Assembly: GCA_004431415.1 (NCBI GenBank)
Contig: QPMI01000517.1
Location: 124,001-188,000, forward strand
Length of the DNA: 64,000 bases
Reading direction: 5' to 3'
From: Cyanophora paradoxa CCMP329
Lineage: Eukaryota; Plantae; Glaucophyta
The notes beneath the pieces are model-generated. The model was not told the origin of the DNA, made no database searches, and saw only the letters and a program-made list of their open reading frames with translations. A program made the position numbers and the translations under genes. Each line of letters starts with the position of its first letter. Positions within the stretch are counted from its first letter, which is position 1. Shown piece by piece: positions 1,601-64,000 of this stretch.

Positions 1601-4600
1601 CCGCATCCCGCCCCCCCTGGTCGCACCTCCCGCCTCCCTTCTCCAACTTCCCTCCGCCTTTCTGCTCCCTCCCTGCCTATTTCTCCTCCTCCTATTGCAC
1701 CGCCTGACAACCCCCCTCTTCAACCCCACCCCTGCCCCACATGCTCTCCGGGATTTCCTTGCACAAGGACGCCACCGGTTCGGTTCGCCCCTCTCCTCAG
1801 CACGCACACCTCCCCTCCATACCTCCCGTTAGCAGCCCTTCTTCTCCATCTTTACCTCGCGTCCCCGGCCCTCCCCACTATTCTTCAAATCGGCGCCTCC
1901 GCCCGCTTCCTGCTTGGCTCCCTCCCACTCCTCCCTCTCTCTCTCCTCGGGGACCCCCCGCCCTACTCCCCCCCCGCGCCTCCCCCCACTCCACCAGACT
2001 CCCCCCACCAAACCCCCCTTGCGGCGGGGTGCCTCCTCTGCACCCTCATTCTCGCACGCCGCCGCTTCCCCTTCTCGCCCTCTAACCACGCCTTACTTAG
2101 TCTTCTCACCCTCCCCCTCCACCCCCCGCCCCCACCGCTCCCCCGATACTCCCCCATCCTCCCTCCCTACGCTAGCCTCCTCGCCGCTCTCGCCTGGGCT
2201 CAGCTTACTGCAGCCACCCTCAATTTCCCCCCTTTAGCATTCGAACTCCTCCTGACCACTCCGGCCTCCCTAGCGGCAGAATGGCACGTCCTTGTCTGCA
2301 CAACCTTCCACTTCCTAGTAGACCTCCGGCGAGCCCTGTACGAGGCAGCAGACCCGGGCGGAACTCCCCTCTCTCTCTCCCTCATCGCCACCGCCCCACT
2401 CATCCTTCTCCACTTCTCCCGGCCCGAGCCCATCGAATTTGTCAGTCTTATCACTGCGGCATCCCTCGCGGGTTTTGCGCTCCAATCTCTCCTCGATAGT
2501 ATCTCTCCCCGCGGCCCCCTCCTCCAAGCTCCGTACCCGAACGCCGTCCCCGTACCAGTGATTCGCTCCCTCCTCCTCCTTTCCCTATTTACACACACGG
2601 AGACGCGCACGGCCACACCAAGCCCTCCTCCCGCCCGGCCCAGCGCCTCCGCCCTGGCTGTACTCGCGTTCACGCTCGTGCTCGCCGTCTTGTTGTGGAC
2701 CGTCTTAACAAAAATTTCCAGTCACTGTACCTCCCCCCTACCCTGGGGGGTACGCACACGCGGCAATCCCCGATTCTCACCTGCACAACTCACAACCCGG
2801 CCCCTGCATCTCGCCGCCATGGGCCGGAAAAGTGGCAAATCCCCAGCTGACCCCAATATTCCCGAGTCTGATCTGGGAACAGCCCCACCCGACCCAACGG
2901 ACTCCCTAGCGACCTCGCTCTCGACGGCCGCGACCCTCCCTTCCGGATCCCAAGGGCAGTCCGAGCCACCCCTTCCGTCAGCAACTCCCCTCCCAGCCGC
3001 CGAGGGCATCCCGGAGGAAACCACCCACCCTGCGATCTCGGCGGCCCGAACGCAATCAGAACAGCGTTTCGGTCCGGGCCCCACCTCTCTCATCCTCCCC
3101 ATTATCGCTTTCATCACTCACTGGACCACAGCGGCCGTCCAGCAGACAAAGAACAGTTTGTACGGAGCAGTGGCGATCCGGCGCCAGATCTTCTCCTCCC
3201 CCTCTGCTCTGCTGAAAGCCTCCCCGGAGAACACAGCCTCCGGCTGCCGACGCCCCCTCCCAGACCAAGCCCGTAACACCCTCGTCATCGTGGCTCCCTA
3301 CACCTCATTCATGCCGGCCATGCCGCCCGGCTTCCTGGCCCTCGCAGAAGGCAAACTGACAGCCGCAAACCAAGACTACGTCAAAGCAAACCGTGGCTAC
3401 GGCAACAATTTCCTTCGCGACCACCCGACTCACCCAGCACACGGCAAGCTCAACCTGAACGGCGCAATCCCCACTGTCTTCAGCGGCACTGAGCGGGATA
3501 GCCGCCGTACCTACGCGACTCAGGCAGTGGGATTCCTGGTCAGCAACAGCCCCGCCCTGACTCTTTTCCACCAGCTCCCAACCCCACTCCCCAGGTTGAT
3601 CCCATCGGCCACTGGACTCCTGAATTCCAGAACAAAGTACTCGACTGGGCGGCCCAAGACCTCGCCCTCCCGGACCGCAAAGGTGCTCGCGGCGCACTCC
3701 TCGACGACTACCGCGCCCTCCTGGAACCCCAAGCTGACCGCGAACTCTACGAATACGTCGTACGCACTTCTCCTAGCTGCACACCGCACTTGCGCTCACT
3801 CCCAGCCTATGCAGATCCGCCACGCGGCCCCCGGCGGGCCCCTACGCGCAGAAGACGGATCCGCGGTCACTACCACGCTCGCCGAAGTTCTGACGGACTT
3901 CCAACGGTACCTTTTCAACGTTCTCCAGGCAGGCGGCACAGCACCGGACGTCGCCGGCCGCGCCGCAATCAACGCCATGCAAGCCCTCACGTACAACAGC
4001 AAACTCGACGGTCATGAGGCCTTCGTCCTCGTGGATAGCAGCACGCACCGCACCCTGTGCGCGGCAGACCCCGCCAACCAGCTCCCTCCGGCCGAGGCGG
4101 TCATGGCCAGCGCCTTCTTCCCCTCCCTCCTCGGATGCGCTCTCTGCCTCCCGCGCGGCCTCCACTCCGACGATCACCTCCGCAGCGCCTCCTTCTCCCT
4201 GTTTATCCCGGGCTCCACCGCTCCCTCGTTTCAGGCGGTATCTTACATCACGCGCGCCCTCTATCTCCAGGGGATCACGGTCCTGGGCACGATCCACTCC
4301 TCGCTCCCCGCCGGTAACCCAACCCTCGTGGTCGTATGCGCGCTCGACTCCTACGCTTCGCTCCCCCTCCCGTCGCGCCGCCTCTCCTTCTCCGATGACG
4401 GCCTCGCACTCCAAGCTTTCTTCCGCACTTTCAACATCGTCCGCCTCTTTCCTTTTTCTCACCCCATTCCTCGGCGTAACGCTACCCTCAGGGAACTGAA
4501 GCTGCCCCGGTGCTGGTGGAAACCTATGAAATACTACTCACGCCTCCGGCCTCTGATCTCTCACTTGACCTCACCTACGGCGATTTCAACCTCGACCTCA

Positions 4601-7600
4601 CGGTCGCGCTCTCCAAGTGCTGCACTAAGTGCCGCACCGGGCCACACCCTACCGACTGGTTCCACGGGCCCATCACATGCCGGGTGCTCCCCACTCCTGC
4701 TGCCCCCACCCCCACCCGCGGCCCCTCACCTCCTCGTAGGCCAAACGCCAGCGCACTTCCGATGTAATCATGCTGGCGGCTCCCCCGACCCTTGCCTCCC
4801 CGCCTGTATCGTCGCCTTTGATCTCGCGCCGCAAGGCCCGCTTCTAGCACTCATGTACTGGCTGCTGCACGTCCGTAAAAGGTTACAGTCTCACTTTACA
4901 CCTCAGCCTGCCCGGCCCCCGCACCTGGCACATCCACTCCCACCCCTCACCCTCACTCCATTTGCACTTTCTGCACATGGCTCTGGGCGGAATAGCACAC
5001 CCATGCCCCAATTTCAAATTCATAATCGACAGACCCCACAGGCCCCGCGGCCCCTCCAGACAGCACTCGCCGCCTCCGCACCGAGCACATACTCTCACTC
5101 CAACAGCCCTTGCCAGCCGCCGTCCAGACCCCACTCGCCGCCTACCTCCCCCCCCCCGCACACATCGGCCCAGTGTGATCTGCAGGACACCGTCAGCCCC
5201 CCCAACGCCCGCCGCCGCGCTAGGGTCGGCGGACCTGAGCCCGGGGCGGGATCGCCGACGCACCCCTACGCGCCGCCCGCCCTGCCCCCGCCTACGCCGG
5301 CTCTGCACGCCCTACAAGACAGCCTCAGCCCCCCCGACGCCCGCCGCCGCACTACGACCGATGCCCGTCGCTATGCTCAGGCCAACGGACCTGATCCTGA
5401 AGCGCGAACGCCGCCGAGCCCCCACGCGCCGCCCGCCTCGCCCTCGCCCGCGACAGCTCCGCGCGACCTGCAAGAACCTATCAGCCCCCCCGCTGCCCGA
5501 CGAAATACTCAGGCTGCCGAACCTGGGCCTACAACGGCGCCACCACCCGACCCTCGCGCGCCGCCCGGTCGCCCCGCCGCCCGACACCATGCTAGGCCTG
5601 ACGGACCAGAGACTGAGACGCCGTCTCCGATAGCCTCTCCCACGCTGTCCGCCTCGCCTCCGCGGGCGACGGCTGCGCACGGCCGGCAGGAAATGCCGGG
5701 GCCCCGCGCGCCGCCCGTCTTCCTCCCGCCTGCACCGACTATCCCGCGGGACCCTACTACACCGGCTCTCTTGCCCGCACTCGCGCTGGAGCTCCGCGGC
5801 CTGCCGGCGGCTGCCCTACAAGATTCGATCCACTGCCCGGGGCTTAGCGCTTGGGCCGAGGAGCCCGCGCCAACTCCACAGGACTCATCCCAGGTACATC
5901 CCGCCGAATCCGGGCGCGATATGCAGCTGCTGCTGGACCCCAGTGTGCCGTCCGCCTCTCTCCTGCCCGCAACGCTATGCGACTCGCGCGCTGGCCCGGA
6001 ACGGCCGACGGCGCCGGACACCAGAATGACTACCATCGCATTCTGCACAGCGCTCATCCTACGACACCCGGCTTCCCCCCCCCCCATAGGGGTACATACC
6101 ACCTCAGCTCCGCCCAGCCCAACCATGAATCCGCTTGCCGCGGTTCACAACCTGATGGACCTCTCTCGGCAAACACTACGTAAGTGGCTCGACAGCACCC
6201 CCACTCACCGATCCCACTCGCCTGAAGCACCCGCAGAAGATATCCACCGAGAGCTCACACACGTCAACATCCCCGACGACCAGGCGGATGAAGACGAGCG
6301 GGACGAGAACGCTCAAGCCCTTTCCGCCCGTCTTCGCCAGCTGCTCACCGGACTAGGCGGCTCTCCGACAGTAGAAACTTACTCTGATACTCTCCCCAGC
6401 ATCATCGGGTGCAATCCTTGCTACAGCGTCGCTGGTGAAACAGTAGCGGAAGCCTCAGCCACCACCCAGCTCGCCAACCCGGTAGTAGTCGTTCTCAACT
6501 GTGAGCCAGCCGGCGATTACTCCAGCTCAGCTAGCACCCTCAGCTACGCATCGGCATCCCCGCACTCGCCATCCCCGGACCACATCCAGCGTACCACCCT
6601 CGAAGCGGCGGAAGACTGGCGAGCTCACGTAGGATCTGAGCTAGCACGACGCGGCATCTTCCTGGTGCCAGCCACACCCACTTTCTTCCACCTAGCGTGT
6701 ACTGGCCCTCTCGAATGCGGCCTGCAGTCCGAACGCTCCCTCCCCGCTTTCAGGGTCCGTCCCACTGCCAACCTCTTCACCCCCCCTATACTCATACCTC
6801 GCCAGCTCGATCCTCTCCTTCCTCCCGGCCCCGTAGCGCACGGGCGCCGGACCGCAACCGCCCAAATCCTGGCGGGACAACTGCGCAACCTCCTCCACGG
6901 CTACTGCGACCCGGACCGCACTTACGGCGTCCTCGCGGCCCACACGTCCGCACTCCTTCGGGGAGGCGACCCCGTTCTCATCCGCCTCGCTGCCTTAGGC
7001 CAAGTCCCTCTCACGGACCTTCTCTTGGGCGCCCTTATCCTTCTCATAGAAACCAATTCCCCCGATGCCTTCGAGACCTCCTCCCTCGACGCCTTTATCG
7101 AGGCCATCCTCTCCATCCGCCAATTTGGTATAACCTTCGACCCCGACCTCAACATCTCCGAACTCACCCTTTTCCTCCCCCCGAAAACCGCTACCTCCCT
7201 TCTTCTCTGCCTCCCTGACTTCCCCTTCATCCCCTCCACCCTCTGGGCAGCCATCACCCACTCCCGGACACCCTCCCGCCGCTCCTTACTGCTCCTCCAT
7301 CACCCGTTCCGCACTCACCACGACCGGGGCGACTTTGTTCTTCTTCTGGCCCGCTCTTCCGATCTCTTCCCCGACCCCCCCACCCACTCTAAACGAGAGC
7401 CCTTTCACGATAGGAAATTCCGCACCGAGAATTTTTCCGCCAAACTGGACGCTCTCCACAACCGCCTCTCCCCCTGCCCCCTCTTTGGACTTCTCGCCGA
7501 CCCCGAGTCCCTACCATACATTCTCCTTCTTTTCCCCAAGGCCGCGTACTCCATGCTCCCACCTCAAACTTCCCTCCCACTCACCACCTTCCCCACTCCC

Positions 7601-10600
7601 TTCCACTCCTGCGAATCCCACCTCCCCTCTCCGCACCCGTCCCATATCACGGCCCGCCCCCGCCTCCTGTCCAACCCTAAAGCAAAGGACGACTACGATG
7701 ACTTTCCGGGCACCCGCCTCTGGGAACTCTTCGGTAGCGAAGGCGACCAATACCTCCCGCTATCCCCCGGCCTCCTCGCCGCCATCATCTGCCCCCACTG
7801 CCTCGCCTCCGACTTCTTCTATCGGGATACCTCCTGGATCCACCCCGCTCACCGGTGCCCGGTACGCCGACATCACTCTCCCACTCGGTGCCGCCCCACG
7901 CTTACCCCCCCCGCAGGCGGCGTGACCCTCCTCCCCCCTCCTCCCTCCTCCCCCCCTCCCCCCCCTACCATCCCCTTCGACACCCCCGCCTGCTCCCCTC
8001 CCCGCGCCGACGTTTGCGCCGCGTTTATGAATACGACAAGTGGCCTCCCCTGCCTCACATACACACCCGGGCTACCCCCTCGAGCTCGAAGCCGCGATAG
8101 GGCTATCGCACCTGGGCCCGTACCGCGAACGTCATTGGGCCCCCGCACGGCGCCCGATTTACCCTTGCCCGCGTCAGCCCCGCTCGTACCGGCAGACCCC
8201 CGCGCGCCGCCCGCCCTGCCCCCGCCCGCGCCGGCCCCTCGCGACCTGCCGACAGACCTTAGCCTCCCCGACGCCCGCCGCCGCGCTCGGTCCAACGGAC
8301 CTGAGCCTGAAACGAGACCGCAGCCGAACCCCCGCGCGCCGCCCGCCTCTCCCCCGCCTCAGCCGTACCAGCGCGACGGACCAACGCCTGCAACGTTCCC
8401 ACCGTCGTGCGCGTCGCCCGCCTCATCCTCGCCCAAGCCGACCCCGCGCGACCGGCCGGAGGACCTTAGCCTCCCCGACGCCCACCGCCGCGCTCGGGCT
8501 GACAGACCTGAGCCTGCAGCAAGGTTGCCGCCGAGCTATCACGCGCTGCCCGCCTCGCTCCCACCCACGCCGACTTTGCGGGACCTGCCGGCAGACCTCA
8601 GCCCCCCCGGCGCCCGCCGCCGCGCTAGGGCTGACGGACCTGAGCCTAAGGCGAGACCCCTGCCGGCCTCCCACGCGTCGCCCGCCTCGCCCCCGCCCCA
8701 GCCGGACCCGCGCGACCTGCAGGGAGCTCTCAGCCTCCACGACGCCCGACGTCGGGCCGACGGACCAGCGCCCGAGGCGATACGCCTCCGAACGCCGCCC
8801 ACCTCACCCTCGCCCAAGCCGACCCCGCGCGACCGGCCGGCAGACCTTAACCCCCCCAACACCCGCCGCCACGCTCGGGCCGACGGACCTGAACCTGAAG
8901 CGAGACCGCCGCCGACCTCCCACGCTCCGCCCGCCTCGCCCCCGCCCCAGCCGGCCCAGCGCGACCGGCAGGAAGACCTCAGCCTCCCCGACGCCCGAAG
9001 CTGCGCCTGGGCCGACAGCTCCGAGCCTGCAACGAGACCACCGCCGAGCTCCCACGCTCAGCCTGCCTCGCCCCCGCCCACGCCGGCCCCGTGCGCCCTG
9101 CCGGACGCCCTCAGCCTCCCCGCGGCCCAACGCCGCGCTCGGGCTGACAGACCTGAGCCTGCAGCCAGCTCGCCTCCGAGCTCTCACGCACAGTCCGCCT
9201 CGCCCCCGTCCACTCTGACTTCGCGGCCCCCCCGCGACCTGCACTACACTGTCCGCCCCTCCGATGCCCGGCTCTGCGCCCATGCTGACGGACCTGGATT
9301 AGCCGCGAAACCGCCGACGGGCCCCAGCACGCCGCCCGTCCCGCCTCCGCTCCGGGCGCCGCACGATCTACAAGACGCTGTCAGCCTCTCCGCTGCCCGA
9401 CTCCGCGCTCGCGCTGACGGACCTGGATCTGCAGTGCAGCCGCCGCCGGGCCCCGGCGCGCCGCCCGCCCTGCCTCCGCTCGAGCCGGCGCCACCGGGCC
9501 CCTGCGCGCCTCCGGTTCCGCCCCCGCCCTCGCCGGCGCGGTGCGCCCTGCAGGACGCTGTCGGCTTCCCCGCTGCCCGGCGCCGCGCCCGCGCTGACGG
9601 ACCCGGACCCGACGTGCAGCCACCGCCGAGCCCCAGCGCGCCTCGCGCATCGCCTCCGCCCGCGCCGCGCGACCTGCAGAACACTGTCGGCCGCCCCGCT
9701 GCCCGGCGCCGCGTCCGCACTGACGGACCTGGACCTGAAGAGAAGCCGCCACCGAACCCCAGCGCGAACCGCGCCTCGCCTCCGCCCGCGCCGTGTGACC
9801 TGCAGGATGCTGTCGGCCGCCCCGCTGCCCGGCGCCGCGCCCACACTGACGGACCTGGACCTGAAGAGAAGCCGGCGACGGGCTCCAGCGCGAGCCAAGC
9901 CTCGCCCCCGCCCGCGCCGCGCGACCTGCAGGATGCTGTCGGCCGCCCTGCTCCCCGGCGCCGCGCCCGGGCCGAAGGACCTGAACCTGAAGAGAATCCG
10001 CCGACGGACCCCAGCGCGCCGCCTGTCTCGCCCCCGCCCGTCCCGTGCGACCTGCAGGACGCTGTCGGCCGCCCCACTGCCCGGCGCCGCGCCCGCACTG
10101 ATGGACCTGGACCCGACGAGAAACCGCCGCCGAGCCCCAACGCACCGCCTGGGTCGCCCCCGCCCGCGCCGCGCGACCTTCAGGACGCTGCCGGCCGCCC
10201 CGCTGCCCCGCGCCGCGCCCGCGCTGACGGACCTGGATTTGAAGAGAAGCTGCCGCAGAGCCCCAGCGCGCCTCGCCCCTCGCCTCCGCCCGCGCCGCGC
10301 GACCTGCAGGACGCCGCCGGCCGCCCAGCTGCCCGGCACAGCGCCCGCGCTGACGGACCTGGACCTAAAGTGAAGCCGCCGCCGGGCCCCAGCACGCCGC
10401 CCGTCTCGCCTCCGCCCGCGCCGGCGCCGCGCGACCTGCAGGACGCTGTCGGCTTCCCTGCTGCCCGGCGCCGCGCCCGCGCTGACGGACCTGGACCTAA
10501 AGTGAAGCCGCCGCCGGGCCCCAGCGCGCCTCGCGCATCGCCTCCGCCCGCGCCGCGCGACCTGCAGAACACTGTCGGCCGCCCCGCTGCCCGGCGCCGC

Positions 10601-13600
10601 GTCCGCACTGACGGACCTGGACCTGAAGAGAAGCCGCCACCGAACCCCAGCGCGAACCGCGCCTCGCCTCCGCCCGCGCCGTGTGACCTGCAGGATGCTG
10701 TCGGCCGCCCCGCTGCCCGGCGCCGCGCCCACACTGACGGACCTGGACCTGAAGAGAAGCCGGCGACGGGCTCCAGCGCGAGCCAAGCCTCGCCCCCGCC
10801 CGCGCCGCGCGACCTGCAGGATGCTGTCGGCCGCCCTGCTCCCCGGCGCCGCGCCCGGACTGACGGACCTGGACCTGAAGAGAACCCGCTGACGGGCCCC
10901 AGCGCGCCACCTGTCTCGTCTCCGCCCACCCCGCGCGACCTGCAGGGCGCTGTCGGCCGCCCCGCTGCCCGACGCCGCGCCCGGGCCGAAGGACCTGAAC
11001 CTGAAGAGAATCCGCCGACGGACCCCAGCGCGCCGCCTGTCTCGCCCCCGCCCGTCCCGTGCGACCTGCAGGACGCTGTCGGCCGCCCCACTGCCCGGCG
11101 CCGCGCCCGCACTGATGGACCTGGACCCGACGAGAAACCGCCGCCGAGCCCCAACGCACCGCCTGGGTCGCCCCCGCCCGCGCCGCGCGACCTTCAGGAC
11201 GCTGCCGGCCGCCCCGCTGCCCCGCGCCGCGCCCGCGCTGACGGACCTGGATTTGAAGAGAAGCTGCCGCAGAGCCCCAGCGCGCCTCGCCCCTCGCCTC
11301 CGCCCGCGCCGCGCGACCTGCAGGACGCCGCCGGCCGCCCAGCTGCCCGGCACAGCGCCCGCGCTGACGGACCTGGACCTAAAGTGAAGCCGCCGCCGGG
11401 CCCCAGCACGCCGCCCGTCTCGCCTCCGCCCGCGCCGGCGCCGCGCGACCTGCAGGACGCTGTCGGCTTCCCTGCTGCCCGGCGCCGCGCCCGCGCTGAC
11501 GGACCTGGACCTAAAGTGAAGCCGCCGCCGGGCCCCAGCGAGCCGCCCGTCTCGCCTCCGCCCGCGCCGGCGCTGCGCGACCTGCGGGATGCCGTCGGCC
11601 TCCCTGCTGCCCGGCGTCATGCCCGTGCTGACGGACCTGCGGCGCCGAGCGCCCTGCAGGACGCGGTCGACCTCCTTAAGGAACAGTCCGCCTCGCCTAA
11701 CTTGGCGCCCCTAACCACGCACCGGCCCCATCCTGCGAAGCCCCCGCCCTCAATTAATCGCGGATTCACCAACTCGCGGGCACTAGCTAAGCATCGGACC
11801 TACTCCCACCAACGCTCTGAAAATGCGCACGAAAGCACGTCTACCCCCGCCTGCCCGTACCCCCCCCTCGGCACCGCCGAACCCGCGATGGCGACGCCGT
11901 CGAACCCCATTCCTTCTCTCGGACAGCTCCCTCCGCAAGCGCTGGCGCTCCGAGCATGGATGCTTCCCGAACTTGGTCTGTACGCCGCCGCAACCGGTTC
12001 ATGCAAACCCGCACCTCACTATCTCTCCCACTCTATCGCAGCGCGCATCACGGGCCGTCTGTATCCTCTCCTTCCTAGTCGCCCCTGGAGCCCGACTACA
12101 AACACGCTCTCGGTCCCCCACTGGTCATCCTTCGAGGAATGGACGGCCTGCTACTTCACCATTTTCCATTCCTTCCACGCCAGCCCGGGCCCGATCAGCG
12201 CGGCTACGTGGGACTCCATCGCCGACTGCACCCGCTGTCGGTCGCTCCAGGCTCCCGCGACGAGCGCCACTTCACAGCTTCTCAACCCGGACATCTGCAT
12301 AGTCTCTGCACGCCCGTATCAAGCGACCCGCGCGCTCCGTGCCGGGGCCGAGGCGACGGCACAACGACTCCTCGAACTCGCATGTGGCAGCGGAGTGGAT
12401 TCCTTCGACAACCTTGACATTGACTTCGTACGCCCCCACAGCCACCATGGCCCGTGTTTCGGCCGCCGCCGCTCCCCCCGCGAGGCTGCGGAGACTAGCT
12501 CCTTCGTCCTCGAAGTACGCACTGCTCAGGCCTTCTTCCGCGCTGCTCTCCTACCACGCCCGCCTTTGCTCATGTGCTCTCTCCTCCGGCAGAACGCCAC
12601 GGCACTCACTGACGAACTGGAGGCGGGCGCCCGCCTGACACGCTGGGCCCGGGCGGCGAGCTCTCACCTCTTCAGCGACGACCTCTTCTGGGGCGACTTC
12701 GCCGACCCCGCCGATGTTCCTGAACCCGACATCGCCCTCCCTCTCTCCCCCCTTTCGGCCCTTCTCTCCAGCCCCGCTCACCCCTACGCCATAATCCGCC
12801 TTTATACCGTTGGAGAACCAGCCCCCATCGACGCGCTTGCCGGCTTGCTCCGGATTTTAGCCGACCGTCGTGCTCCCCTCGACCAGCCGCCCAGCCCTGG
12901 CTACCACACCATACTAGAAGAAGCTAGGACGGCGGCTTTCCTAGAACTACGACAATGGTCTGGCCGCTACCTCCCTGAACTGGGAGTTTCCGAAATCGCG
13001 GCCCTTGTCCCTCTTGAGACCGCCCGCTCCCTCTTCCATGCTTCTCTTCCTCTCTCATACCAGGCTACCAAGGCGGCGATCCTCGCGAGCTCCGCGGGTC
13101 AGCCGGCCCTCCTCCTCCACCACCCCCTCTCGACCCACATTGAACGCCACGACCTTATCTTCCTGGTCCTCCGCCTCTCTGACCTAGACCTCCCCGCCCC
13201 CGACCCCGAAACTCTTCGCCGCACTCTTCAAGCCCTCCTCGTCGGCCCCCCGGGCACCCTCGCTGCTCTCCGTCCCCTCGGCCTCCTCTGTACCTCGTCC
13301 CTGGCCATCCTCGCCGTCCCATCCATTCTCTACGACCAGCTCCCTCCTCCCGCGCCCTACGCAGACCACCCCCCGACCCCGATCACTGCTCTCCTCCGCC
13401 CCATCCCCCGCGCCGCCCCTTACTATCAGACTCCCAGCCCGTCTCTCGCCGCCTGGGAACTCTTCCGCAGCGACCGCCCCACCTATACCCCCCTCTCTCC
13501 CGCTGCTATCCAGCAGACAACGTGCCAACGCTGCGTTTCGACACCTGCTTTCCTCGCCAGCGCGGCCTGGCTCCACTCCACACGGCAGTGCCCGGTACGC

Positions 13601-16600
13601 CCCCCAGACCCCTCCCCCTCCTCCCGTGCTTACCCCGCCCCCAGCTACACCCCTGAAGACCCCCCTCCCCCCCCTTCCTCCCCTCCCCCGCCCCGGAGTT
13701 ACCCCCCCGAGCGTGTCCCCCCCTCACGCTCCTCCCTACCCGCTATACGCTGGGAACTGTACATAATGTTTCATACCCTTTTCGTCTCTTCCGTGACCAA
13801 TCGCACCCGCACCACCACCTCCCGGCCGTCGTTGCATCCTCCTCGCCCCCCTGCCCCCCCAGCGCCCCCTAGCGCCCAAACTCCCACGCACATCGAGCCC
13901 CACCAGACCAGCAGCATCGTAATGCAAAATTCCAAATTGCGTGGATACAGCCGGCCGTGCCCCATCTCCTCCTGGCACAACGGGGACCGGACCCCTCCTT
14001 TAGTGAGAGTCCAGCAGCTCCACCAATACTCGAGCCGCGGCCCGCAGAGCCGCCCCTCGGGTGGGAAAGACCATCTGAGCAACGGAAGCGCTAGCGTTGA
14101 GGCGGCCCACGGCACACAGCCGCCAAGGACACCGCTCAGATCCACCCCCGCGCAGAACGGGCACTATCCCCTCGAAGCCTGCCACCTCCACAGCCTCCAC
14201 GGTCACCTCGGTCGCCACCCGCAACAACGCCTGCACATCGCCCAGATCCAACAACAACCTGCCGCGCGTAGCCGCGAAGCAGCGCAGCTCCACCTCCACG
14301 AAATCACTGCTCAATTGCACGATGTAGTCGCTCTGCAGATACTCCTTAGCCCGATGCGCCACGTCGCCCACAACGGACATGTACTCGAGGCGACGCAGCA
14401 CTTCAGCGTCCGGCTGCAGCCCGCCCTGCGCACGCGAACTCAGCCACGAACGCCGCTCTCACAGATTACTGGCACGCACATGCCGGCACCTCCCAGGAAA
14501 CGCTCTCCAGAGAACTGCCCCGATGTCCCGCCTCACGATCACAGGCCCAACAAAGCGCACTTCCTCGTCCGACCCGCTCCCACTACCACGCTCCTCTACA
14601 ACCCCGGCAGCCGGGACGGCTCTCACACCGGGGACTGCCATTCCTGGGGGAACCGGTACCCCTGCTCCCCTTACCCCCCCTGCTCCCTCCGTAGACTCAG
14701 CGAATCCGCATCCACACACCCAGCCCCGTGCAACCAGATGGGGGACTTTATCGATATCTATTACGAGCTCCAGCTCATTCTCCCGTCGGAGCATGCCGCC
14801 ATGACCCGCCTACAGAAGCACGCGACAGACCTGGCGAAGGACCCGGAGGCTGCTAGACATCTCACCAGCCTTTCCGTACAGCAGCCACGCCACCGCTCGT
14901 CCGCCACCACTACTCGCTTTCTTGGCCCGGTCGACAGCGCCCCCCGTCACGCGTGGCACGCTGGGCTCCGCCACTTCGGCCTCCAGGAATTTGCACCGGC
15001 TCACGCCCAATACATAGCCGCAGCCATGGCAGCCGTGATAGAAACAGCGGAACGCCCGCTCACTACACTAGCCCCGTCTCCCGAGCCAGGACTACAGCTA
15101 AACAGCCTGATCCTGTCGGCCCTCAGCGATCTCTTGGATCTCGCAGCGCTCACAGGCGACGTCTTCGCCTACGATGTCCCCTGGAAGCACCTCACAGCCC
15201 GTCCTTTCGCCTCACAGGACGCGATCCAAACCTTCAAGAACGCGGCGTTCCGCCAAGGCTACATCAAGGTCGCAATCACCAAAGCCTTCATCGACCATGA
15301 GACCACTCTCCACGCGCTTCACCCGACCGGCACGATCACGTCCAGCACGTACATCCATGCGGATCACCCGGGCACCACCCGCACCGGCCGGTCGGAACGC
15401 GCCTCAATCACATTGGCCCTCGCCTTCCTCGATGCGGCACTATCCCGTGCCCACCATCTTGAGAAATTCCTCCGCCGCGCCTTTTCCCTCCTTAACTGCC
15501 GTCAATTTCCCTACGCGGTCAGCTGCACCCCCTCCCCCGGCCCCTCACACCCGGTACTAATCCCCGCCTCAGACCGCTACCCTGGCTCCCTGGCTCTTTG
15601 GTCCGACCCAATCGACACCCCTCACCCCCACTCCCAGCACGAGCTGACCCCGGCCCGCACAGGCTTCCCGCGCACCATCAACACCTTTTCCGGAGCACTG
15701 CGAGACCTCCGCCGCCACTTCGTCCCGGGCCAGGGCACCACTGCAGAATACCGCCAGGCTATCTTTGCCTCGGATCTCGCCCCTGCGACCCACACTCTCA
15801 TTTTGGAAACGTGGCTGACTCTAGTCCTCCGCTATGGTATTAGCGCTGCAATCCAGAGCCGACCCCTCCCCGCCATCTTCCTCGCATCCATCCCTACCCA
15901 ACTTGGGGACCTCCACCGCGGGTTTGCCCCACCCGATTTCCCCAACACCACGTACTCCCTCTCACCCTCACCCACAGATGGACCCGTGTGTCCCCCCGCA
16001 CGAAGGAATGGATCCGTCTTCTCTCAGGCGAAAGTCCCGGGGGCCCGTCCCGTTCCCCTCGCATCTCCCTCTAACCGACCCAGACCCCTTCACCCTCCCC
16101 TCCCCCCCCTCGACTGTCCCACACTCTGCTCTTCCAATCCCCTGTCATGTTCGGAAACAATATGGCAATCCCGAGCAGACACTGCCCTTTCGCTACTCCT
16201 CCGCGCCGTACCCGCCGGAATGAGCCCTGCACCCTACCCGCCCCCGACACCCCGCACGATAGAGCCCCCACACGCCGGAAAGCCGCCGTCGCGCCTCCGC
16301 AAGCCGCCCGCCCCGCTTCCGATCGTGTCAGCCCCAGACGCCCTGCGGACGGCGGCCGGTCTCCCCGCCGCCCGCCACCGCACTAGGGCCGAAGCACCAG
16401 GGCCCCAATGGACGTCGGCGTCGGACCCCCGAACACCACTCGCCCCGCCCCCGCCCGCGCCAGCCCCGCGCGACCTGCAGGACACCCTCAACCTCCCCGA
16501 CGTGCAAAGCCGAGCGCGGGCCGACGGACCTTTGCCTGAAGCGAAACCGCCGTCGGGCCCCCGACCGCCAACCGCCCCACCCCCGCCCACGCCAGCCCTG

Positions 16601-19600
16601 CGCGACCCGCAGGACGCCCTCAGCCTCCCTGACGCCCAAAGCCGCGCGAGGGCCGCTGGACCGGCGCCTGAGGCGAGACCGTCGTCGGGCGCTCGTGCGC
16701 CGCCCGCCCCGTCCCCGCCCGCACCAGCCCCGCGTGACGTGCGGGACGTCCCCAACCTCCCCGACGCCCAGAGCCGCGCGAGGGCCGCTGGACCGGCGCC
16801 TGCGGCGAGACCATCGTCAGGCCCTCGCGCTTCGCCCACCTCGCCCCCGCCCGAGCCAGCCCCGCGCGACCTGCAAGACACCCTCAGCCTCCCCGACGCC
16901 CAAAGCCGCGCGAGGGCCGACGGACCGGCACCCGAGGCGAGACCGCCGTCGGGCCCCCGAATGCTGCCCGCCCTGCCCCCGCCCGCGCCAGCCCCGCGCG
17001 ACCTGCAAGCCACCCCCAGCCTCCCCGACGCCCAAAGTCGCGAGAGGACCGACGGACCCGCGTCTGCGGCGCGACCGCCGCTGGGCCCTCGAGCGCCGCC
17101 CGCCCCACCCCCGCCCGCGCCAGCCCTGCGCGACCCACAGGACGCCCTCAGCCTCCCCGACGCGCAAAGCCGAGCGCGGGCCGACGGACCGGCACCTGAA
17201 GCGAGACCGCCGTCGGGCCCTCGAGTTCTGCCCGCCCCGCCCCCGCCCGCGCCAGTCCTGCGCGACCCGCAGGACGCCCCCAGCCTCCCTGACGCCCAAA
17301 GCCGCGCGAGGGCCGATGGCCCTGCGCCTGAGGCGAGACTGTCGTCGGGCGCCCGTGCTGACGGACCTGGACCTGAAGTGAAGCCGCCGCCGGGCCCCCG
17401 CGCGCCGCCCGTCTCGCCCCCGCTCGCGCCGGCGCCGCGCGACCTACAGACCGCTGTCGGCCTCCCCGCGGCCCGGCGCCACACTCGTGCCGACGGACCA
17501 GGACCTGCGGTGAAGCCGCAGCCGAGCCCCAGCGCGTCGCCCGTCTCGCCTTCGCCCGCGCCGGCGCAGCGCGACCTGCAGGACGCGGTCGGCTCCCCCG
17601 CTGCCCCGCCCCGCGCCCGTGCTGACGGACCTGGACCTGCAGTGAAACCACCGCCGGGCCCCCGCGCGCCGCCCGCCTCGCCCCCGCTCGCGCCGGCGCC
17701 GCGCGACCTGCAGACCGCTGTCGGCCTCCCCGCTGCCCGGCGTTGCGCTCGTGCCAACGGACCTGGACCTGAGGTGACGCCGCCGCCGAGCCCCAGCGCG
17801 TCACCCATCTCGCCTCCGCCCACGCCGGCGCCGCGCGACCTGCAGGACGCTGTCGGCTTTCCTGCTGCCCGGCGCCGCGCCCGCGCTGACGGACCTGGAC
17901 CTAAAGTGAAGCCGCCGCCGGGCCCCAGCGCGCCGCCCGTCTCGCCTCCGCCCGCGCCGGCGCCGCGCGACCTGCAGGACGCGGTCGGCCTCCCCGCCGC
18001 CCGGCGCCGCGCCCGCGCTGACGGACCTGGACCTGAAGAGAAGCCGCCACCGGGACTCAGAGCGCCGCCCGCCTCGCCTCCGCCCACGCCGCGCGACCTG
18101 CAGGACGCTGTTGGCCCGGCGGCTCGGTGCCGCGCCCGAGACGACTGTCCGATCCCTAGAGCAAACCTAGGGTTGCAGAAGTGTCCCGGAGGCCCGTCTG
18201 CAACGCCTCGCCCGTCGAACGCGTCGCCAGGCACGCCGCAAGAAGTCACTCCCCGTCGTGCTACTGTTGTCGCTGCCGCGCCACGCCGCGCTGCCCGCCT
18301 CGGCATTCAGCAGGCCGCGCAAGTACTTTCGCAGCTCAGTCGCCGTGTCTGCATCTGGAGCACCTTATGGACCACTGTCGCTAGACCGCGCTACGGCATG
18401 CTCCAGAACTTGATCGCTGGACCGGAGCACGGAAGCCCCATCAGAGCCGTCGCATACCGCAGTGGCCGGTGGAGCATCCCTCCCCAGTCGGAACGTCCCA
18501 GGGCCCCGGACGAAACTGCGCCTACCGGTACCCCCACCGCGTGCCGTCAAAAAACTCCAACGCGAACAGGCTTTTTTATTCATTCGATTTGTGAGTCGGA
18601 CAATGATTCGAAGCGGCCCAGTGCCTCCGCACTCCGCGATTGGGGCTGGAATAACTGCACTATAGCTAGTACCACTAACCCCGCGTACGGCCACGTGCCA
18701 GGGCCTAGCTGTAACACCGATACTACCATTGCAGGTTACGCAGCTAGCACTGGCGCCCACGCTAGTGCTGGCCCCACCAACGCCGGCGCCTCAAGCTCAG
18801 ACGCTGCGCTGCATGACGCCGAGAGCTGTCGTACGAACCACGCGTACGGATCAGGACGTGTACTAGCTATGTGTACGGCTGCGTACCTCGCAGTCAGCCC
18901 CCGCGCTAGTGCCCACGTGCACGCTAGCGCTGGCCCCGCCGGCGCAGGCGACACGGACTCTGCGCCGCTTGACGTCGACGCCGGTCTCGAACCCCTGGGC
19001 CGGCGCCGGACCGCGCGCCGCGCCCCACAAGCCCAACGGTCCTTCAGCCGCCCGGCCCCTCTCCCCACACGCCTCCTCCTCTGTGTTCTCCTCGCCGCCC
19101 TTGTCCCCGTCGCCCTTGCGGACATCGAGCCCAGCACAGCAACGGCCGCCGCAGTCGCTACCGCCGCCGCCGCCCTCTCCTCTCCGACACTAGTCACGGC
19201 GGCCTCGTCCCTTCTAACATTATACCCTCCCTCTCTGTACACCGCTGACCGAATTGACGCCCGCCACCACCGAGATGCGCTCCAGATCCCTGTCCTAGCA
19301 CACCCCCCGGACGCGGCAAATGCGAAGCTGAACCTCCGCGCCCTCACGTGGAATATTCGCCGCTTGGAGGGGAAGGCGAGCGGCAACAATATTGCAACTA
19401 AATTTATCAGCGCAATTGACTATGGCCGCCGTGACTGGGACTGCCACTTCGTTGCTCTTCAAGAGGTCGACATGGTCCCTACCGACCGCCCCCCCTCGAA
19501 GCCCTTTCCGCCCAATATCCGCGATCACCTGATTCAGACAGCAGTCCGCCGCCATAAATCTAGCTACCTTGTCTACTCTCCTCCATCCGCGGCCCGTCCT

Positions 19601-25700: not shown

Positions 25701-28700
25701 CGAGCCATCCCCTACTCAGCTGCCATCGACCCCGACGGCCCCAGGTATGATCGCCGAGTACTTCCCCTCCTCGACGGCATAAAATCTCGCCTGGCTGCCC
25801 TTAAAGCGGCCCCCCTCTCCCTCATCGACCCCAACCCTCGGTCTGGGGCCCACCTGGCCACACCCGTTCTCCTCGCACAACCCATACCTGCAGAACCCGT
25901 CGACGCTTTCTTCAGACTTCTCCAAAACCGCCAAGTCTCCTTCCGCCTGCATGCCCCGACCACCCCCAAGTGCCTCTTCCTCTCGTCCTCCCACGCAACC
26001 TCGATCCTCATGGGCACAGCCCCCACTGCCCTTTCTATCAAAGCCCGCGCAGGCCAGCCACAACTGGACCGACCCTACGTCCCGCACCCTTTCTCCCCAA
26101 CGGAATACGATTATATTCTCCTCCCCCTGCCCCCCTCTGGGTCCCGACCCTGGCGACTAGCAATCATCTCGGCCCGCCTCCGCGAAATCCGCATCCTGGA
26201 CGTCACCCGCAAACCCGCCTCCGACGTCACGGCCCCTCTTAAAGACTGGGTCATCAACTGGTGGACGGCGACTCTCCGCCCCGGCGACTCCTCCCCACGC
26301 TCGGCCTGGAAGTACGACACCAGCACCTTCCCCACACAAGCCTGGAAAAACGTTCACACGGGTGAAGACGCTCTCTTCGTCATGACCGCTGCTGAGTTCA
26401 TTGGCCGCGGTGAGGAAGTCCACCTGTATGGCAAAGGACGGGGCCGCCCCATCCCCTTCCACGCCCCCATCTACCGGGAGCGTTGGGCGGCCGCTCTCCT
26501 TCTCCGGGACCCTGAGGTTCTCCTGGGGACAGTCCAGGCCAACGACCCGGCATTCACAACAAAACGACAGCGCATGACCCCGCGCACCAGCTCCCGCCCT
26601 TCCCAGCACACGGCAGCCAAAGCCCGCCGTCCGGTTAGACGCAAGCGAGACCCCACCCCTCCTCCCTTCCGTCCTCCCCTCCCCCCCCCGTCCCTTACAC
26701 CGGTAACCCCCCGGTCCCCCAATTCCCCTCCCTCCTCCCCGCAGCTCCCCACCCCCCCCCCACCCTGCCCTTCCCCACCCCCACGCCCCCCGGCGCCCGA
26801 GGCCCGACCAACTGCTTCCCCAGGCCGAACCCCCGCTCACACGACTGAATTTCCCCTCCCTCGCCCCCTGACGCTGGCGGAGAAAAGTTGGCTGGGGAAT
26901 GCCTTCCGGTTTGCAGACAATGATTACTGCGCGGAGCAAACTCTCATGTCGAAACCCCCCTCCCACCCGCCCCCCGACCTGACCCTCATCGCCACTCCCT
27001 CATTCGACGAGGCGACCTTATCCACCTCCGGCCGAATGCCGCCCTCAGCCTCCCCCTCGTGGAAGCCTTCCTTGACATGCTCTCCTCCCGCGAAGCCGCC
27101 CTGGCCTCGCCTCACCCTACCTACTTCCTGTCGTCCAGCTCTTACCCCGCTAGTGCAGCCTCCCAATTTGACTCTCGGGGCTCTGCCCCCTCCCCCTGCA
27201 CCACTACCTTCCCCCCGGACGCCTTCTCGATGCCCGCCTTGTCCTTGTCCCCATCCTTACCTATCGCCCCACTCATCATGCCCCACCAGCCCCCTCGCCG
27301 ACCCTTCCCTCAGGCAGATCCCGGCACCCTCAGGGCCCCCCGGGACACTGGCACCTACTTGCCTTATTTCCTCAGACGCGCTCGTTCTACATTCACAACG
27401 GCTCCCTCGACGTCCCTGATCACCTTGTCTCCTTTGCACAAGACTTGGCGGCCACTTGGAGTCAACGCGACTCTGGCTCTCCCCTCCCCCTCACTCCATT
27501 CTGCAGATGGACCTACCTACGCCCGGAGACATCCCTCTCCGTTCTCCAGCCTCCCAACAGCACGGCCTGCGGCCCTCTCCTCCTCCTCACAGCTGACCTA
27601 CTCAGTCGCTCCTCAGCACTTGCCCCGTCGGACCTGCCCCGCCCCCCAGCCTACATTCAGGTCGACAATGCTGCGCTCCGCAGATACCGTGAATATATTG
27701 CCCTCAGCCTCTGCTACGGGTCCGTCACCCTCGACCCTATATGCTGTGGCCCTGCCCTCCCGGCCCTCAGACCCCCACCGACCTTCCCGGGGCGCCCCCG
27801 ACCGCCACGCCGCCCCCCAGTCTCCACCGGCGGCACCCTCCCTACCCTCGACTCCCCACCACCCTCCCCCGACCGCCCAGCCCTCCCGCGCTCCCCAACT
27901 GTGCTTGAGTCTACCCCGCCTCGCCCTGCAGGGCCCGCCACCCCCCTCCCTCCCGGTGCTCGCTACGCCCAAGAACTCGCCTCTCAGCTCGCCGACCTGG
28001 CCCGCAACGAAGCCTCCGCAACAGCACGCCGTCTCTTCCGGCCGTCCCACGTGACCCCACTCGAGGCGGCGACCATCCTAGCTGAAGCCGCTCACCGCGA
28101 CGCCGCCCAGCCGCCACCACGGTCCGCCAAAGCATCTAAAACGGCCGCAAAGAAAGAGGCGGCCAGGACCCCGGCCAAGAGCCGTATCTCGAACCCAGCC
28201 TATACTCCTGACAACTGCCACAATGACGCCGTTGACAAGCTCGCCAAAACGGCCCCAGACGCCCCCCTCTCAGCCCTTCTCTTCATTCCTCACAGTTTCA
28301 AATGCTTCCTCATCCGCGTCGGCCTCCCGCCCCCGTCATCCCAAGGCCCAGTTCCAGGAGCCGAGCCTTACAGAGGCAGACTCCATGCATACCGCGTTGA
28401 GGGGGACCCCCGCTCTCACTTCCTAGCCGAAGCCTCCCTCTCCCAATACCTCGACTGGCGCCAGCTTCGCAACGCTGGGGCCGTCCTCAGCAATCCTCAC
28501 GTTACCCTCGCCCCAGCCCTCTCCCTCGTGTCCGACAAGCCACCGGACCGCCGTACCCCCACAGGCGATCACCTCCGCAAAGTCAGATTCCAGTGCATTC
28601 TTGGAGGCCTCCCCTCCCTCACCATCCGCCTCCTCCACGACCCCGACCTATACGGCCCTCTCTTTCCTGACGGTATCGCCCACTGCCCCTTCTGTCACCT

Positions 28701-30973: not shown

Positions 30974-31031
30974 CATTGATACATGTGCCGTGGTGTATCA
31001 ATGCGACGTCCACTTTTGCAAAAAAAAAAAA
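30974..31031 (+). terminator. 3' stem-loop and poly(A) tail of element A
   Basis: cattgataca..tgtatcaatg perfect 10-bp stem, then A12 at 31020-31031. Confidence 0.75.
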
Positions 31032-34000
31032 GCGGCCGCGCCTTCGACGCCGAGCAAGTCCGGCAGCAACCGGTGGCCCAGGCCACTGCGAGCCAGCAGC
31101 CCCGCCGGGCGGTTCGTGCGGCGCGCGAAGTCCCGGCACACCAGCGCATGTACGACCAAATTATGCAAGCCGGCGCTGCTGGCCTCCGCCCGACTTCCCT
31201 TGGCAAGCGACCGCTGCCGCAGTAGGCCTAGCTACAGCCATAGTCCCCAGTGCTCCAGTGAGAGCCCCTTTACCCACAGAACACTTGTCTGTAGCTTTCC
31301 CGCCCTTGATTCGATAAACCGCCATGCTGAAGATTGTCTTCCAGTGCGCGTGCACAAGGGCACTGGGATGGTACACAACGTCAACAACTGTACTGTACCC
31401 AAATGAAAAAGAAAACTAAATCTGCGGCCGCGGCCCCCGCGGCACCAAAAGCAGCTCCAAAACCTAAGGCGCCCGGCAGCAAGCCAACGGGCCAAAAGAA
31501 ACAAAATGCGACCAAGCTGCAGCTGAACAACAAGGCGGCGGGCGCGGCGCCCGCGGGATCTGGGCAGGCGGCCGCGACGCTTCGGCTGGAGAACGTCTTC
31601 CCCCCTAGCATGTTTCCCGAAGGTGGCGACTTCATAGGGGACGAACCGGCTATCAGGAAGCAGAAACCGGACGGGGTGCTGAGGACCATGACCTTCAACA
31701 CGAGAGGCTCCAGCGCCTACAAGCTGCAGCAGCTAGAAGAGTTCTGCTGCCGCTGGGATGTCGATGTAGCGGGCGTGCAGGAGCTGTCGATGACAAGGCC
31801 CCAGATGGCCGCCGCCCTGAGGTCGAGAGGGGAGGACCCGCTCCAGCCGGAAGGCGCGATAACGCACGGAAAGCTCCTGTACACGCTAAAATCAGGAGAC
31901 GGAACGCGAGGGAGCGGCGCCGCTCTCTGGGTCGCGCCGCAATGGGTCAAGCACCTCACGACGAAGTACGAGGTCCAGGGCCGGCTGATCGGGTTCGAGC
32001 TCCGCTTCAAAGGGAACCTCCAGCTCTTCGTGGCGAGCGTGTACATGCCCGCGACCGAGAGCAAAGCTGCGCACCGCCAGGATCAGGAGAAGGTCGTTGA
32101 AGAACTGACGAAGATGTACGACGACTTCTACGAGCGTGACAACGCGCACCTGCTGCTCCTGGGAGACTGGAACTCGGTCCCGGTCCCGTCGAGCTCACGC
32201 ATCCGAAACGGCGCCCTGGCCCAGAGCCACAAAGCCGAACGGAAGTGGTGGCACACGATGATCGACTCGTGGGACCTGCACGACGCCGGGATGTCACACG
32301 CGGCGAAACATGATGACGGAACTCTCTGCGGAGCACGCGAGATCACGCACCGCACCCCGCACGGAAGCAAGGGCCAAGGAGCGTCGGTCGGGGCGGCGGT
32401 GGCACCTGTACCGTCAGACGGAGTAGACGAGTCAGAGGGCGCGGAACGCGAAGCCGAGGAGGAAACGCCGGCTGACCTACCAAAAGACGCGCTCTGGCAC
32501 GCGGCGCGCATCGATGCAGTGCTGGTCTCGGAATCACTGGATCACGCGCTCCTCAGCGCGCACACGTGCCCCGCGTGGGTCGATGCGCCGCACGACTCAG
32601 ACCACTATCCAGCGTTCGCGGACTTCGACCTGGAGGAGGCGGGCATGACAGCGCCGGTGGGACCGAAGCCAGAACCGAAACCCGGGCCACCAGTGTTTGA
32701 CCCGGACGGCCTGAAGCGCACACAAAACGAAAAAGATGAGCTGAAAAGAGAGCTAAACAGGCAGCTCGGCGAAGCCGTCGGGGCGGACCTCGACGCCGTC
32801 GGCGAGGGCACGCCGGAAGAGCGTCTTGAGCGACTGAGCCGCATCCACGCTGCGAGCGCGAGCCTTGTTCAGGAGGTGGCAAAGGAACATCTATGCATGA
32901 GGGGCCGAGGGGGAAGCCGACCAAGCCGCGCAACCTGCCGTGGCAGGCGAAGGCCGACGCCAGAGTTGCCCGCATTCTCGCTGCCTGGAGGAAGGAACCA
33001 GGCGGGATCCCGTCGGAGCTGACGGTCCAGGCGATCGAGAAGCTGCTGCACTACGTGACCGCCAGGGAAGGTCTCCGACCCTTCCCGCTCCGTCCGGCTG
33101 AACGGCGCCAAGCGAGGGCTGAACAAGGCTCACCGCCGCCCGGATCCCCGTATGCGCACTCGAGCTCGCACAGCTCACAAGGCTCGCGCAGCGGTAGCCC
33201 CGCGCCGGTTCCAGCCGTACCCCCCGCGGCTGATCAGCAAGAGGACTGGGCCGAGATGCACCGGCGGCAGCTCAAAGAAGACTGGGCGACCTTCTTCCGG
33301 GAGCTGAAAGTATGGCGAAACCGGACGCGGCACGACCTGCAGAAAATCCGCCGGGCGCTCCAGGCGGAGGACGTTGAGAGGGCATTAAAAGAGAGGCTAG
33401 ACAAGTTCATGGACGGCCGCCAGCTCGGATCCTATATAGCCGCGGTGCTAGAAAAGCCGCGGAACCGCCCGATCATGCACATCACGCGTGTATCCAAGGA
33501 CGGAAAAACGTATGAAATCTACACGGAGCCTGAGGAAGTGAAACGACTCCTAAAAGAGCACTGGCGGAAATGGTGCCGACGCCGACGCCCACGCGTGGGC
33601 TGCACCCCAGAGACAATACCGGAAAGTGCGCTGAAGGATAGCATGGGGAAAGAACTGCTCGACTTCTGGAGGCTGGAATACGAGCCAAAAGCATACGCGG
33701 ACCCTGCACTATTCCGAAACGACATGTCGGTGCCGAGCGAAGGCGAGCTCGGCGACTACATTAAAACGCTAAGAAACACGGCAGCCGGGCCGTCGAACTT
33801 CTCATATGCTATGGTGAAGTTCCTATGGGCGCCGGTGCCCAAGCCGAAGCCCAAAGACGGGAAGGGCAACGAGGCCGGTGGCCCAGCGCCGGAGGGCCCG
33901 AGCCCAGCCGACGAGAGCGCCGAGGAGGCCACGGAAGCGGAGCCCGTACACTGGGGCCGGAAGCTGCTGCTCTCGCTGGTGGCTGAAGCGATCCGCCTCC

Positions 34001-37000: not shown

Positions 37001-37918
37001 CCTGCACACGGACAGTCAGAACGTCTGCACATGGTTCGATAAGTTCGTGCTGAATGCGCACGATATGCACATGCGAGACTACATCCGGAACACGTGCAGC
37101 GCTGAGCTGTACGCGTGGTCCAAGTTCCGTGCCCTGGTGATGGGACGGGATCGGCAGCGGCCGGCTGCGGTTATCAAGGTCAAGGCGCACAGCGACGAGG
37201 ATATGCACGAGCTAAACGACGCCGCCGACAGAGCGGCCGATCAAGGCGCGCACCTGGAACAGGAGGAACTGGACGAGCACTAGTAGAATGGGGTAGGAAC
37301 TGACACTACCCTGACATTATACTGACACTATAAATATTGTCAGAATGATGTCAGCCGGTCTGACAATTTCCTGACAGTACTCTGACACTATTCGGACCGC
37401 ACCTTGGTTTCGTTTGATAAGCCCGAAATGGCTCGGAGGCTCCACCAGCAGTCGTCCCTAGCCCAGTATTAAACGAAAGCGAGTGCACTGCTGCTGATGA
37501 TGTGTCCCCTAGCCTCGAGATAATGTCTAAATAATGTCAGACGGCCTGACATCATCCTGACAGTATTTAGACAATATTGTATTAGTACATTGAAAGGTTG
37601 AAAAGGTTGAAAGGTTCCTATATGAAACTAAACGTAAAACACATAGAGTTACAACAAACAGCGCGTGCACGCTGCTACACGCCGCGCTGCCGAGCCGCCG
37701 CCGCCCCGCGCGCGCCGAGCCGCCGCGCCACGCCGCCGCCCCGCGCCGAGCCGCAGCGCCGCGCCGAGCCGCCGCGCCGCCGCCGCCCCGCGCCGAGCCG
37801 CCTCCCCGCGCCGAGCCGCCGCCGCCCGCCCGCGCCGAGCCGCCGCGCCGCGCCGCCGCCCCGCGCCGAGCCGCAGCGCCGCGCCGAGCCGCCGCCCCGC
37901 GCCGAGCCGCCGTCTCGC

Positions 37919-41444: not shown

Positions 41445-41507
41445 GGTCTCGAAGGCCTCCTTCGGGTCCCGCGTCCACTCCAGGATCTTCTTGCCCCAGT
41501 ACATCCT

Positions 41508-41545
<38 letters not shown>

Positions 41546-63741: not shown

Positions 63742-64000
63742 AGCTGCTGCTGGTCCCACTGGTGCCGTGCACGTGCTGTAGAAGACGCGCGCGCAACTGA
63801 ACGCGCGGCGATCAGCCAGAGTCAACGGCGTGCGATAGCAGCGCTAGAAATGTAGCAATCGAGAGCGCACCTGGGCCTGGGCTCGAATTCGAATGCGCGT
63901 TCGAGGCCTCGGCACGCGCCCCTGAAGAACGGCCGCGCGGACCAGCTGGGACGCTGGAGGCAGACGCGCTGGATGCCCTGTAGGCTGCGGGCTGGATGTG

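Follow-up and report, generated by a model that had tools for sequence, protein, structure and literature searches.

Spliced upstream genes with expanded CCHC motifs in a candidate giant LINE of Cyanophora paradoxa

A long interspersed nuclear element (LINE) is expected to carry one ORF1 and, because it is copied from RNA, to lose introns. In a 64-kb window of DNA from the glaucophyte alga Cyanophora paradoxa (the whole stretch analysed; all coordinates are window positions), three genes, hereafter G1, G2, and G3, lie upstream of an apurinic/apyrimidinic (AP) endonuclease and a LINE-type reverse transcriptase (RT). At least eight RNA-verified sense introns are present in two of the three upstream genes of this LINE-type element, and one reading frame stays open across all of them. 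The reading that we favor overall, with modest confidence, is that of one giant LINE in which G1–G3 are ORF1-like genes and terminal introns act as exits from the frame.

The closest described systems each share part of this arrangement. Type I ORF1 proteins (ORF1p) are defined by an RNA recognition motif (RRM) plus a CCHC knuckle (PMC4120745). Those of plant L1, Tx1, Jockey, I, and R1 elements (PMC4120745, PMC5203782) resemble the products of G1–G3 in their place before the AP endonuclease and RT, in a C-terminal C-x2-C...H-x4-C, and in a predicted alpha/beta region before this motif. They differ in that the loop of G1–G3 has 10 to 13 residues with a Trp and no RRM or DUF4283 is detectable, and in that the locus has three genes instead of one, with spliceosomal introns, inside the RT frame rather than in a separate open reading frame (ORF). 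In Ty1/Copia elements (PMC5580714), a spliced, early-terminated short RNA yields Gag, and the full-length unspliced RNA provides the genome and the enzymes, as we propose here; Copia, however, has long terminal repeats (LTRs), one intron, and one Gag, whereas the present element is of the non-LTR type, has at least 11 sense introns, and carries three genes upstream. Penelope-like elements also retain introns in genomic copies after retrotransposition (PMC8557442), but their nuclease is of the GIY-YIG type and their RT is related to telomerase, in contrast to the AP endonuclease, LINE RT, and poly(A) found here; a Penelope-like identity was ruled out by the AP endonuclease and the LINE-type RT. 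The algal L1/Zepp and Dualen LINEs (PMC8226300) are also long and have extra domains but are far shorter than this element, and RNase H is possible in plant L1s (PMC5203782). In our literature search, no LINE was described as having several spliced paralogs upstream or a frame of 7,000 codons. The locus offers a simple, testable answer to the question of how a LINE keeps introns and balances the output of ORF1 and RT, with the splicing of Copia Gag as a parallel, and it points to an undescribed family of expanded CCHC fingers.

Splicing and shared ends of G1, G2, and G3

The three genes follow one another within a stop-free frame +2 (hereafter the giant frame) that leads into the AP endonuclease and RT (EN-RT). 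Lengths are in nucleotides (nt).

1601-22717, plus strand: stop-free frame +2, 7,039 codons (no stop from 1601 to 22714) through G1, G2, G3, their introns, and repeat arrays into EN-RT
2819-4847, plus strand: G1, six exons, 582 amino acids when spliced; its five introns are joints in RNA-like contigs
3071-3130, plus strand: G1 intron 1, 60 nt, frame-preserving; RNA-contig joint
3539-3594, plus strand: G1 intron 2, 56 nt, departs from the giant frame; RNA-contig joint
3760-3814, plus strand: G1 intron 3, 55 nt, re-enters the giant frame; RNA-contig joint
4439-4491, plus strand: G1 intron 4, 53 nt, last exit from the giant frame; RNA-contig joint
4621-4680, plus strand: G1 expanded CCHC motif, C-x2-C-x10-H-x4-C, in frame +1 and outside the giant frame
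4684-4739, plus strand: G1 intron 5, 56 nt, phase 0, donor GTGCTC one codon (CGG) past the last Cys
6125-7925, plus strand: G2, four exons, 545 amino acids; gene model tig00020952_g16487 (P0006)
6180-6236, plus strand: G2 intron, 57 nt, phase 1; joint in two RNA-like runs
6755-6805, plus strand: G2 intron, 51 nt, phase 0; joint in three RNA-like runs
7790-7858, plus strand: G2 expanded CCHC motif, C-x2-C-x13-H-x4-C, frame +2
7862-7916, plus strand: terminal intron of G2, phase 0, 55 nt, donor GTACGC after CCG; splicing departs from the giant frame and meets a stop after 2 codons
11888-13656, plus strand: G3, four exons, 524 amino acids; identical to gene model tig00020952_g16489 (P0005)
11976-12041, plus strand: G3 intron, 66 nt, phase 1; from the gene model only
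12515-12592, plus strand: G3 intron, 78 nt, phase 0; gene-model evidence only
13523-13591, plus strand: G3 expanded CCHC motif, C-x2-C-x13-H-x4-C, frame +2
13595-13644, plus strand: G3 terminal intron, 50 nt, phase 0, donor GTACGC after CCG; stop after 3 codons
19330-31031, plus strand: LINE enzyme region with AP endonuclease, RT, then RNase H, Ulp1-like motifs, C-terminal CCHC, 3' region, and poly(A)

Splicing was checked over 2250-8150 in contigs of the RNA-like runs X1, X4, and X12, from three studies, and of the DNA-like run X15. That these runs are RNA is a guess, supported by exact GT-AG skips; these are absent from the DNA-like control, and spliced RNA is therefore the only sensible source of the contigs. 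The introns at 3071-3130, 3539-3594, 3760-3814, 4439-4491, 4684-4739, and 6755-6805 were skipped in all three RNA-like runs, and at 7862 the contigs of the same runs continue as a loose end with the letters of 7918 onward. X15 showed none of the G1 or G2 intron skips over this range. G1 and G2 are spliced, terminal introns included. For G3, use of the terminal intron is predicted by gene models at three loci, and its donor hexamer and site are the same as those of G2. The view in the preliminary description that the terminal splicing is real thus stands for G1 and G2, and for G3 it rests on gene models. The G1 model tig00020952_g16486 (P0009) is identical to spliced G1 over the 566 amino acids of the model, and spliced G3 matches tig00020952_g16489 at 524/524 residues. 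As side observations, model g16486 removes 16 amino acids near the G1 start as an extra intron and model g16487 removes 21 amino acids in G2 exon 2 in the same way; both extra introns are absent from the RNA contigs.

The three genes end alike. Each reads C-x2-C-x8/11/11-W-x-H-x4-C (G1/G2/G3), followed by one codon and then a phase-0 GT donor. The terminal introns are all GT-AG, and splicing leaves tails of 35, 2, and 3 residues, exactly as the preliminary description had stated. The spacing from Cys to Trp is unequal, with 8 residues in G1 and 11 in G2 and G3. When the six frames of the 64 kb were searched for C-x2-C-x(6-14)-W-x-H-x4-C, only three matches were obtained, and these were the motifs of G1–G3; no match occurred in 150 Markov simulations of the 31-kb element. 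Given the motif, the chance of an intron at the exact site is about 0.3–0.9%, and the chance of motif plus intron is about 2e-8 to 5e-6 for a pattern that was picked post hoc.

The relationship between G2 and G3 extends beyond this end. Their Smith-Waterman score was 286 against a shuffle maximum of 69 in a nearly full-length alignment, and BLAST gave an E value of 1e-19 with 28% identity over 304 amino acids. Both genes have intron phases of 1, 0, and 0. The terminal introns share one codon position, and the positions of the first two agree to within 3–5 residues, in a poorly aligned region. It is well supported by these comparisons that G2 and G3 are duplicates of an intron-bearing gene with three introns. 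The preliminary description had extended this duplication to G1, which shares only the motif and the intron site with the other two genes. A common origin of the G1 end module with those of G2 and G3 is likely on this basis, whereas G1 as a whole-gene paralog is unproven, without sequence, profile, or fold support.

The giant frame and the enzyme region

Across the introns, off-frame exons, and spacers (~3,870 codons), frame +2 contained no stop, compared with at least 41 expected from the other two plus-strand frames. The chance of a stop-free stretch of ~3,870 codons was P ~1e-18, or 4e-8 without the repeat arrays, and 0 of 15 read variants, a small sample, created a frame +2 stop. G2 and G3 are written in this frame, and their terminal introns of 55 and 50 nt are exits from it. 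In G1, exons 3 and 5 are in frame +1 and exon 6 is in frame +3, and the exit is intron 4, one intron before the terminal one. With intron 5 left in, frame +1 nevertheless meets a stop after 27 codons, and the post-knuckle intron was rejected as the terminator of G1. The "terminating" intron of the preliminary description is thus apt for G2 and G3 and does not apply to G1. The terminal introns get their meaning because the genes are embedded in the 7,039-codon RT frame of the element, a point absent from the preliminary description: unspliced RNA would be read through G1, G2, and G3 into the RT, and the polyprotein would include the knuckles of G2 and G3 and exclude that of G1. Upstream of G1, at 2200-2720, the giant frame also holds a hydrophobic stretch resembling a membrane segment; RNA contigs cover it, and one run joins it to G1.

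At the end of the giant frame, Pfam matched Exo_endo_phos (E = 1.7e-5, slightly above the cut-off) and RVT_1 (E = 7e-19), and the best PDB matches of the RT were R2 RTs. An AP endonuclease is thus followed by a non-LTR RT in one frame, as in AP-endonuclease LINEs. RNase H gave a weak match only. In Dualen elements, RNase H and protease are parts of one long ORF. The plus strand is C-rich from base 1 to ~31,030, and this block terminates at the poly(A) run, an A12 at ~31020-31031 that coincides with the end of the skew. The frame changes near 22610, 23190, and 27100 and leads on to the RNase H and protease-like motifs; the first two changes look like single-base losses, and the intact frame may be longer. 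Downstream of the RT, Ulp1/C48-like motifs (His-Trp, then Gln-x-x-Asn..Cys) were seen at 27300-27580 and 26080-26400 and could process a giant polyprotein. Imperfect tandem units of ~77 bp at 1-170, the start of the window, are possibly promoter monomers of the 5' untranslated region of the element. No tRNA genes were found in the window, and Rfam gave no match in 1-32000.

Gene models reveal related cassettes elsewhere. The order G1, G2, one gene, G3 occurs on tig00020952 and tig00020849, with proteins that are 98–99% identical. It is kept on tig00020571, where the identities are 81%, 70%, and 98% and four more models lie between G1 and G2, so that this copy is a mosaic in divergence. Two further G3 copies end like tig00020952_g16489 at the terminal intron in their gene models. 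The off-frame exons of G1 and both spliced tails are conserved in diverged copies: in the off-frame exons of a diverged copy, 39/55 and 49/64 residues are identical, and the basic tail of 35 amino acids after G1 intron 5 is identical at 31/35 positions in the 81%-identical copy g11493. We infer that G1–G3 move jointly with EN-RT.

Proposed expression and competing explanations

In the reading that we favor, G1, G2, and G3 would be genes of one giant AP-endonuclease LINE of C. paradoxa of at least 31 kb, and the knuckle-plus-intron end of G1 likely came from an older duplication or an exon shuffle, as the motif and intron site suggest. Each gene would give its own short spliced mRNA. Contig cover drops between the genes and, in one run, rises directly before the G1 start codon (contigs cannot show starts); the gaps suggest separate transcription, with promoters and 3' ends of their own. 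The products, of ~520–580 amino acids and ending in an expanded CCHC finger, would probably be ORF1p-like RNA chaperones, judging from position and motif. Splicing at G1 intron 4 and at the last introns of G2 and G3 would shift the frame and end the protein, and intron retention would let the ribosome reach EN-RT, with a rare unspliced full-length RNA as the source of RT. A preference of the LINE RT for its own encoding RNA is established for mammalian L1. If such a cis preference also operates here, only unspliced RNA would be copied, and therefore every genomic copy would carry the introns and stops would be purged from introns and spacers.

The complete proposal joins a LINE longer than 31 kb acting as one mobile unit, three spliced ORF1-type genes of common origin, a single polyprotein frame of 7,000–10,000 codons, a post-knuckle intron that switches between ORF1 and RT, and an RT preference that keeps introns and purges stops. 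Taken together in this form it is tentative, and we would sooner expect it to fail in some part than to hold throughout.

Several observations weigh against the giant-LINE reading. The 5' end of the element lies upstream of base 1, outside the window, and a search for a target-site duplication found no repeat of the 3' flank after the poly(A) elsewhere in the window. The comparison with the other two contigs covers gene models of the G1–G3 cassette. No unspliced RNA was visible in the RNA contigs, which drop rare forms, and splicing must be avoided wholesale because frame-preserving introns, which would be harmless to lose, are kept. Smith-Waterman scores of G1 against G2 and G3 were 48 and 46, inside the shuffle range, with no BLAST signal, and the hhalign probability was 0.5% over whole proteins and 1.4% when the comparison was confined to the last 45 residues. 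Pfam searches of G1–G3 up to an E value of 10 gave one low-complexity match only and no RRM, DUF4283, or zf-CCHC. The AlphaFold models had predicted local distance difference test (pLDDT) values of 30.6 and 31.2 and are unusable for a test of a shared fold; structure matches from these ~31-pLDDT models were nonsignificant and mostly ferredoxin-like (Foldseek E ≥0.01, Z ≤5.8), and we do not count them as evidence. The ferredoxin-like fold is the fold class of RRMs.

The description of G1–G3 as ORF1-like has to be read in this light. The preliminary description had looked to profile searches for RRM and zinc-knuckle types of ORF1, and these returned no RRM and no Pfam knuckle in any of the three. 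Searches of PDB sequences, ESM Atlas features, metagenomes, and viral contigs gave nothing for G1–G3 outside Cyanophora. Instead of the canonical knuckle C-x2-C-x4-H-x4-C, the three genes have C-x2-C-x10/13-H-x4-C, a CCHC-like variant. They do lie upstream of EN-RT, as type I ORF1p genes do, in an element to which continuity of the frame suggests they belong. G1–G3 are thus ORF1-like by position and motif and are not members of the type; an ORF1 identity is plausible.

The strongest competing explanation is that G1–G3 are cargo, or lineage-specific host genes, captured with their introns into the long frame of the element, and serve another function such as counter-silencing, with the logic of the frame unchanged. 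The lack of a known ORF1 domain and a knuckle loop of 10–13 residues instead of 4 would suit such genes, as would the presence in the element of spliced units in antisense and of a fourth gene unrelated to the three. By contrast, every relative found is a copy of this one cassette, which occurs at three loci, and a stand-alone host copy did not appear among 1.8 billion representatives; the position before EN-RT together with a C-terminal CCHC after a predicted beta-alpha-beta-beta region fits a type I ORF1p (PMC4120745). We consider cargo unlikely, though it deserves attention.

Somewhat less probable still is that only G2 and G3 are paralogous and that G1 is unrelated, its knuckle and intron site having converged, since CCHC fingers are often found as C-terminal modules and introns favor G|GT sites. 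This would explain why neither BLAST, Smith-Waterman, hhalign, nor hidden Markov model (HMM) comparisons link G1 to the other two genes. The G1 knuckle was not among the matches listed for the HMM of the G2/G3 tail, profile comparisons with windows of four sizes never aligned more than the motif itself, and a search of the 1.8 billion representatives with a G2/G3 profile found only copies of G2 and G3. G1 also differs in spacing (8 versus 11), frame, donor, number of introns (five versus three), and tail (35 amino acids versus 2–3). However, the common W-x-H-x4-C half and the long loop are atypical of ordinary knuckles, and the intron lies at exactly the same codon, which convergence would have to reach at the low chance given above.

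A segmentally duplicated gene cluster that adjoins a shorter LINE, with no movement through RNA, is improbable. It would accommodate the presence of introns in the genomic copies, the lack of a target-site duplication or a 5' end within the window, and the mosaic divergence of the tig00020571 copy, but it leaves unexplained the stop-free frame that is continuous with the RT across introns, off-frame exons, and spacers, as well as an element-wide C-rich skew that stops at the poly(A). It can hardly be right that the donors arise as by-products of conserved C-P-V-R codons, as the preliminary description had considered, and that the modules are merely parts of a polyprotein: C-P-V-R is indeed read in the giant frame in G2 and G3, but for G1 and G2 the splicing seen in three studies refutes this, and the G1 motif lies outside the giant frame.

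Neighboring features in the window

Tandem repeats occur in the spacer between G2 and G3 and elsewhere.

8410-11639, strand not assigned: 126/132-bp tandem array in the G2–G3 spacer, free of stops in the giant frame

The 126/132-bp units are proline-rich; more of them lie at 16419-18116, and degenerate units lie at 5150-5700. In most units there is a minus-strand GT..AG segment of 55 nt, with a donor that is mostly GTCCGT and an acceptor that is mostly TGCAG. The segments at 5180-5234, 5312-5390, and 5468-5522 in the degenerate units are removed by splicing in the RNA-like contigs from one or two runs. Because a unit is made up of 55 + 71/77 nt, the large arrays would not yield a single ORF in their spliced antisense RNA. 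Between G1 and G2, a spliced antisense transcript runs on the minus strand at 4900-6126, divergent from G2; a minus-strand ATG that overlaps the G2 start codon opens a low-complexity stretch of ~280 codons that is in register with the giant frame. After G3, an antisense gene-like stretch at 14000-14740 is followed by a fourth sense gene-like region at 14738-16200, which has intron-like segments at 15518-15572 and 15601-15662; from 14738 onward, this region showed no similarity to G1–G3.

Beyond the poly(A), a second, purine-rich LINE occupies 31334-37283 and 39873-40870. Its EN-RT has a frame change near 32950, and the element is split by a ~2.6-kb insert that has inverted ends and a 55-bp tandem array. 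On the minus strand, 41450-43600 and 58200-63780 hold two related copies of a multi-exon host gene that looks photolyase-like by eye, and repeated blocks with a 149/298-bp satellite-like unit are found at 49800-55900.

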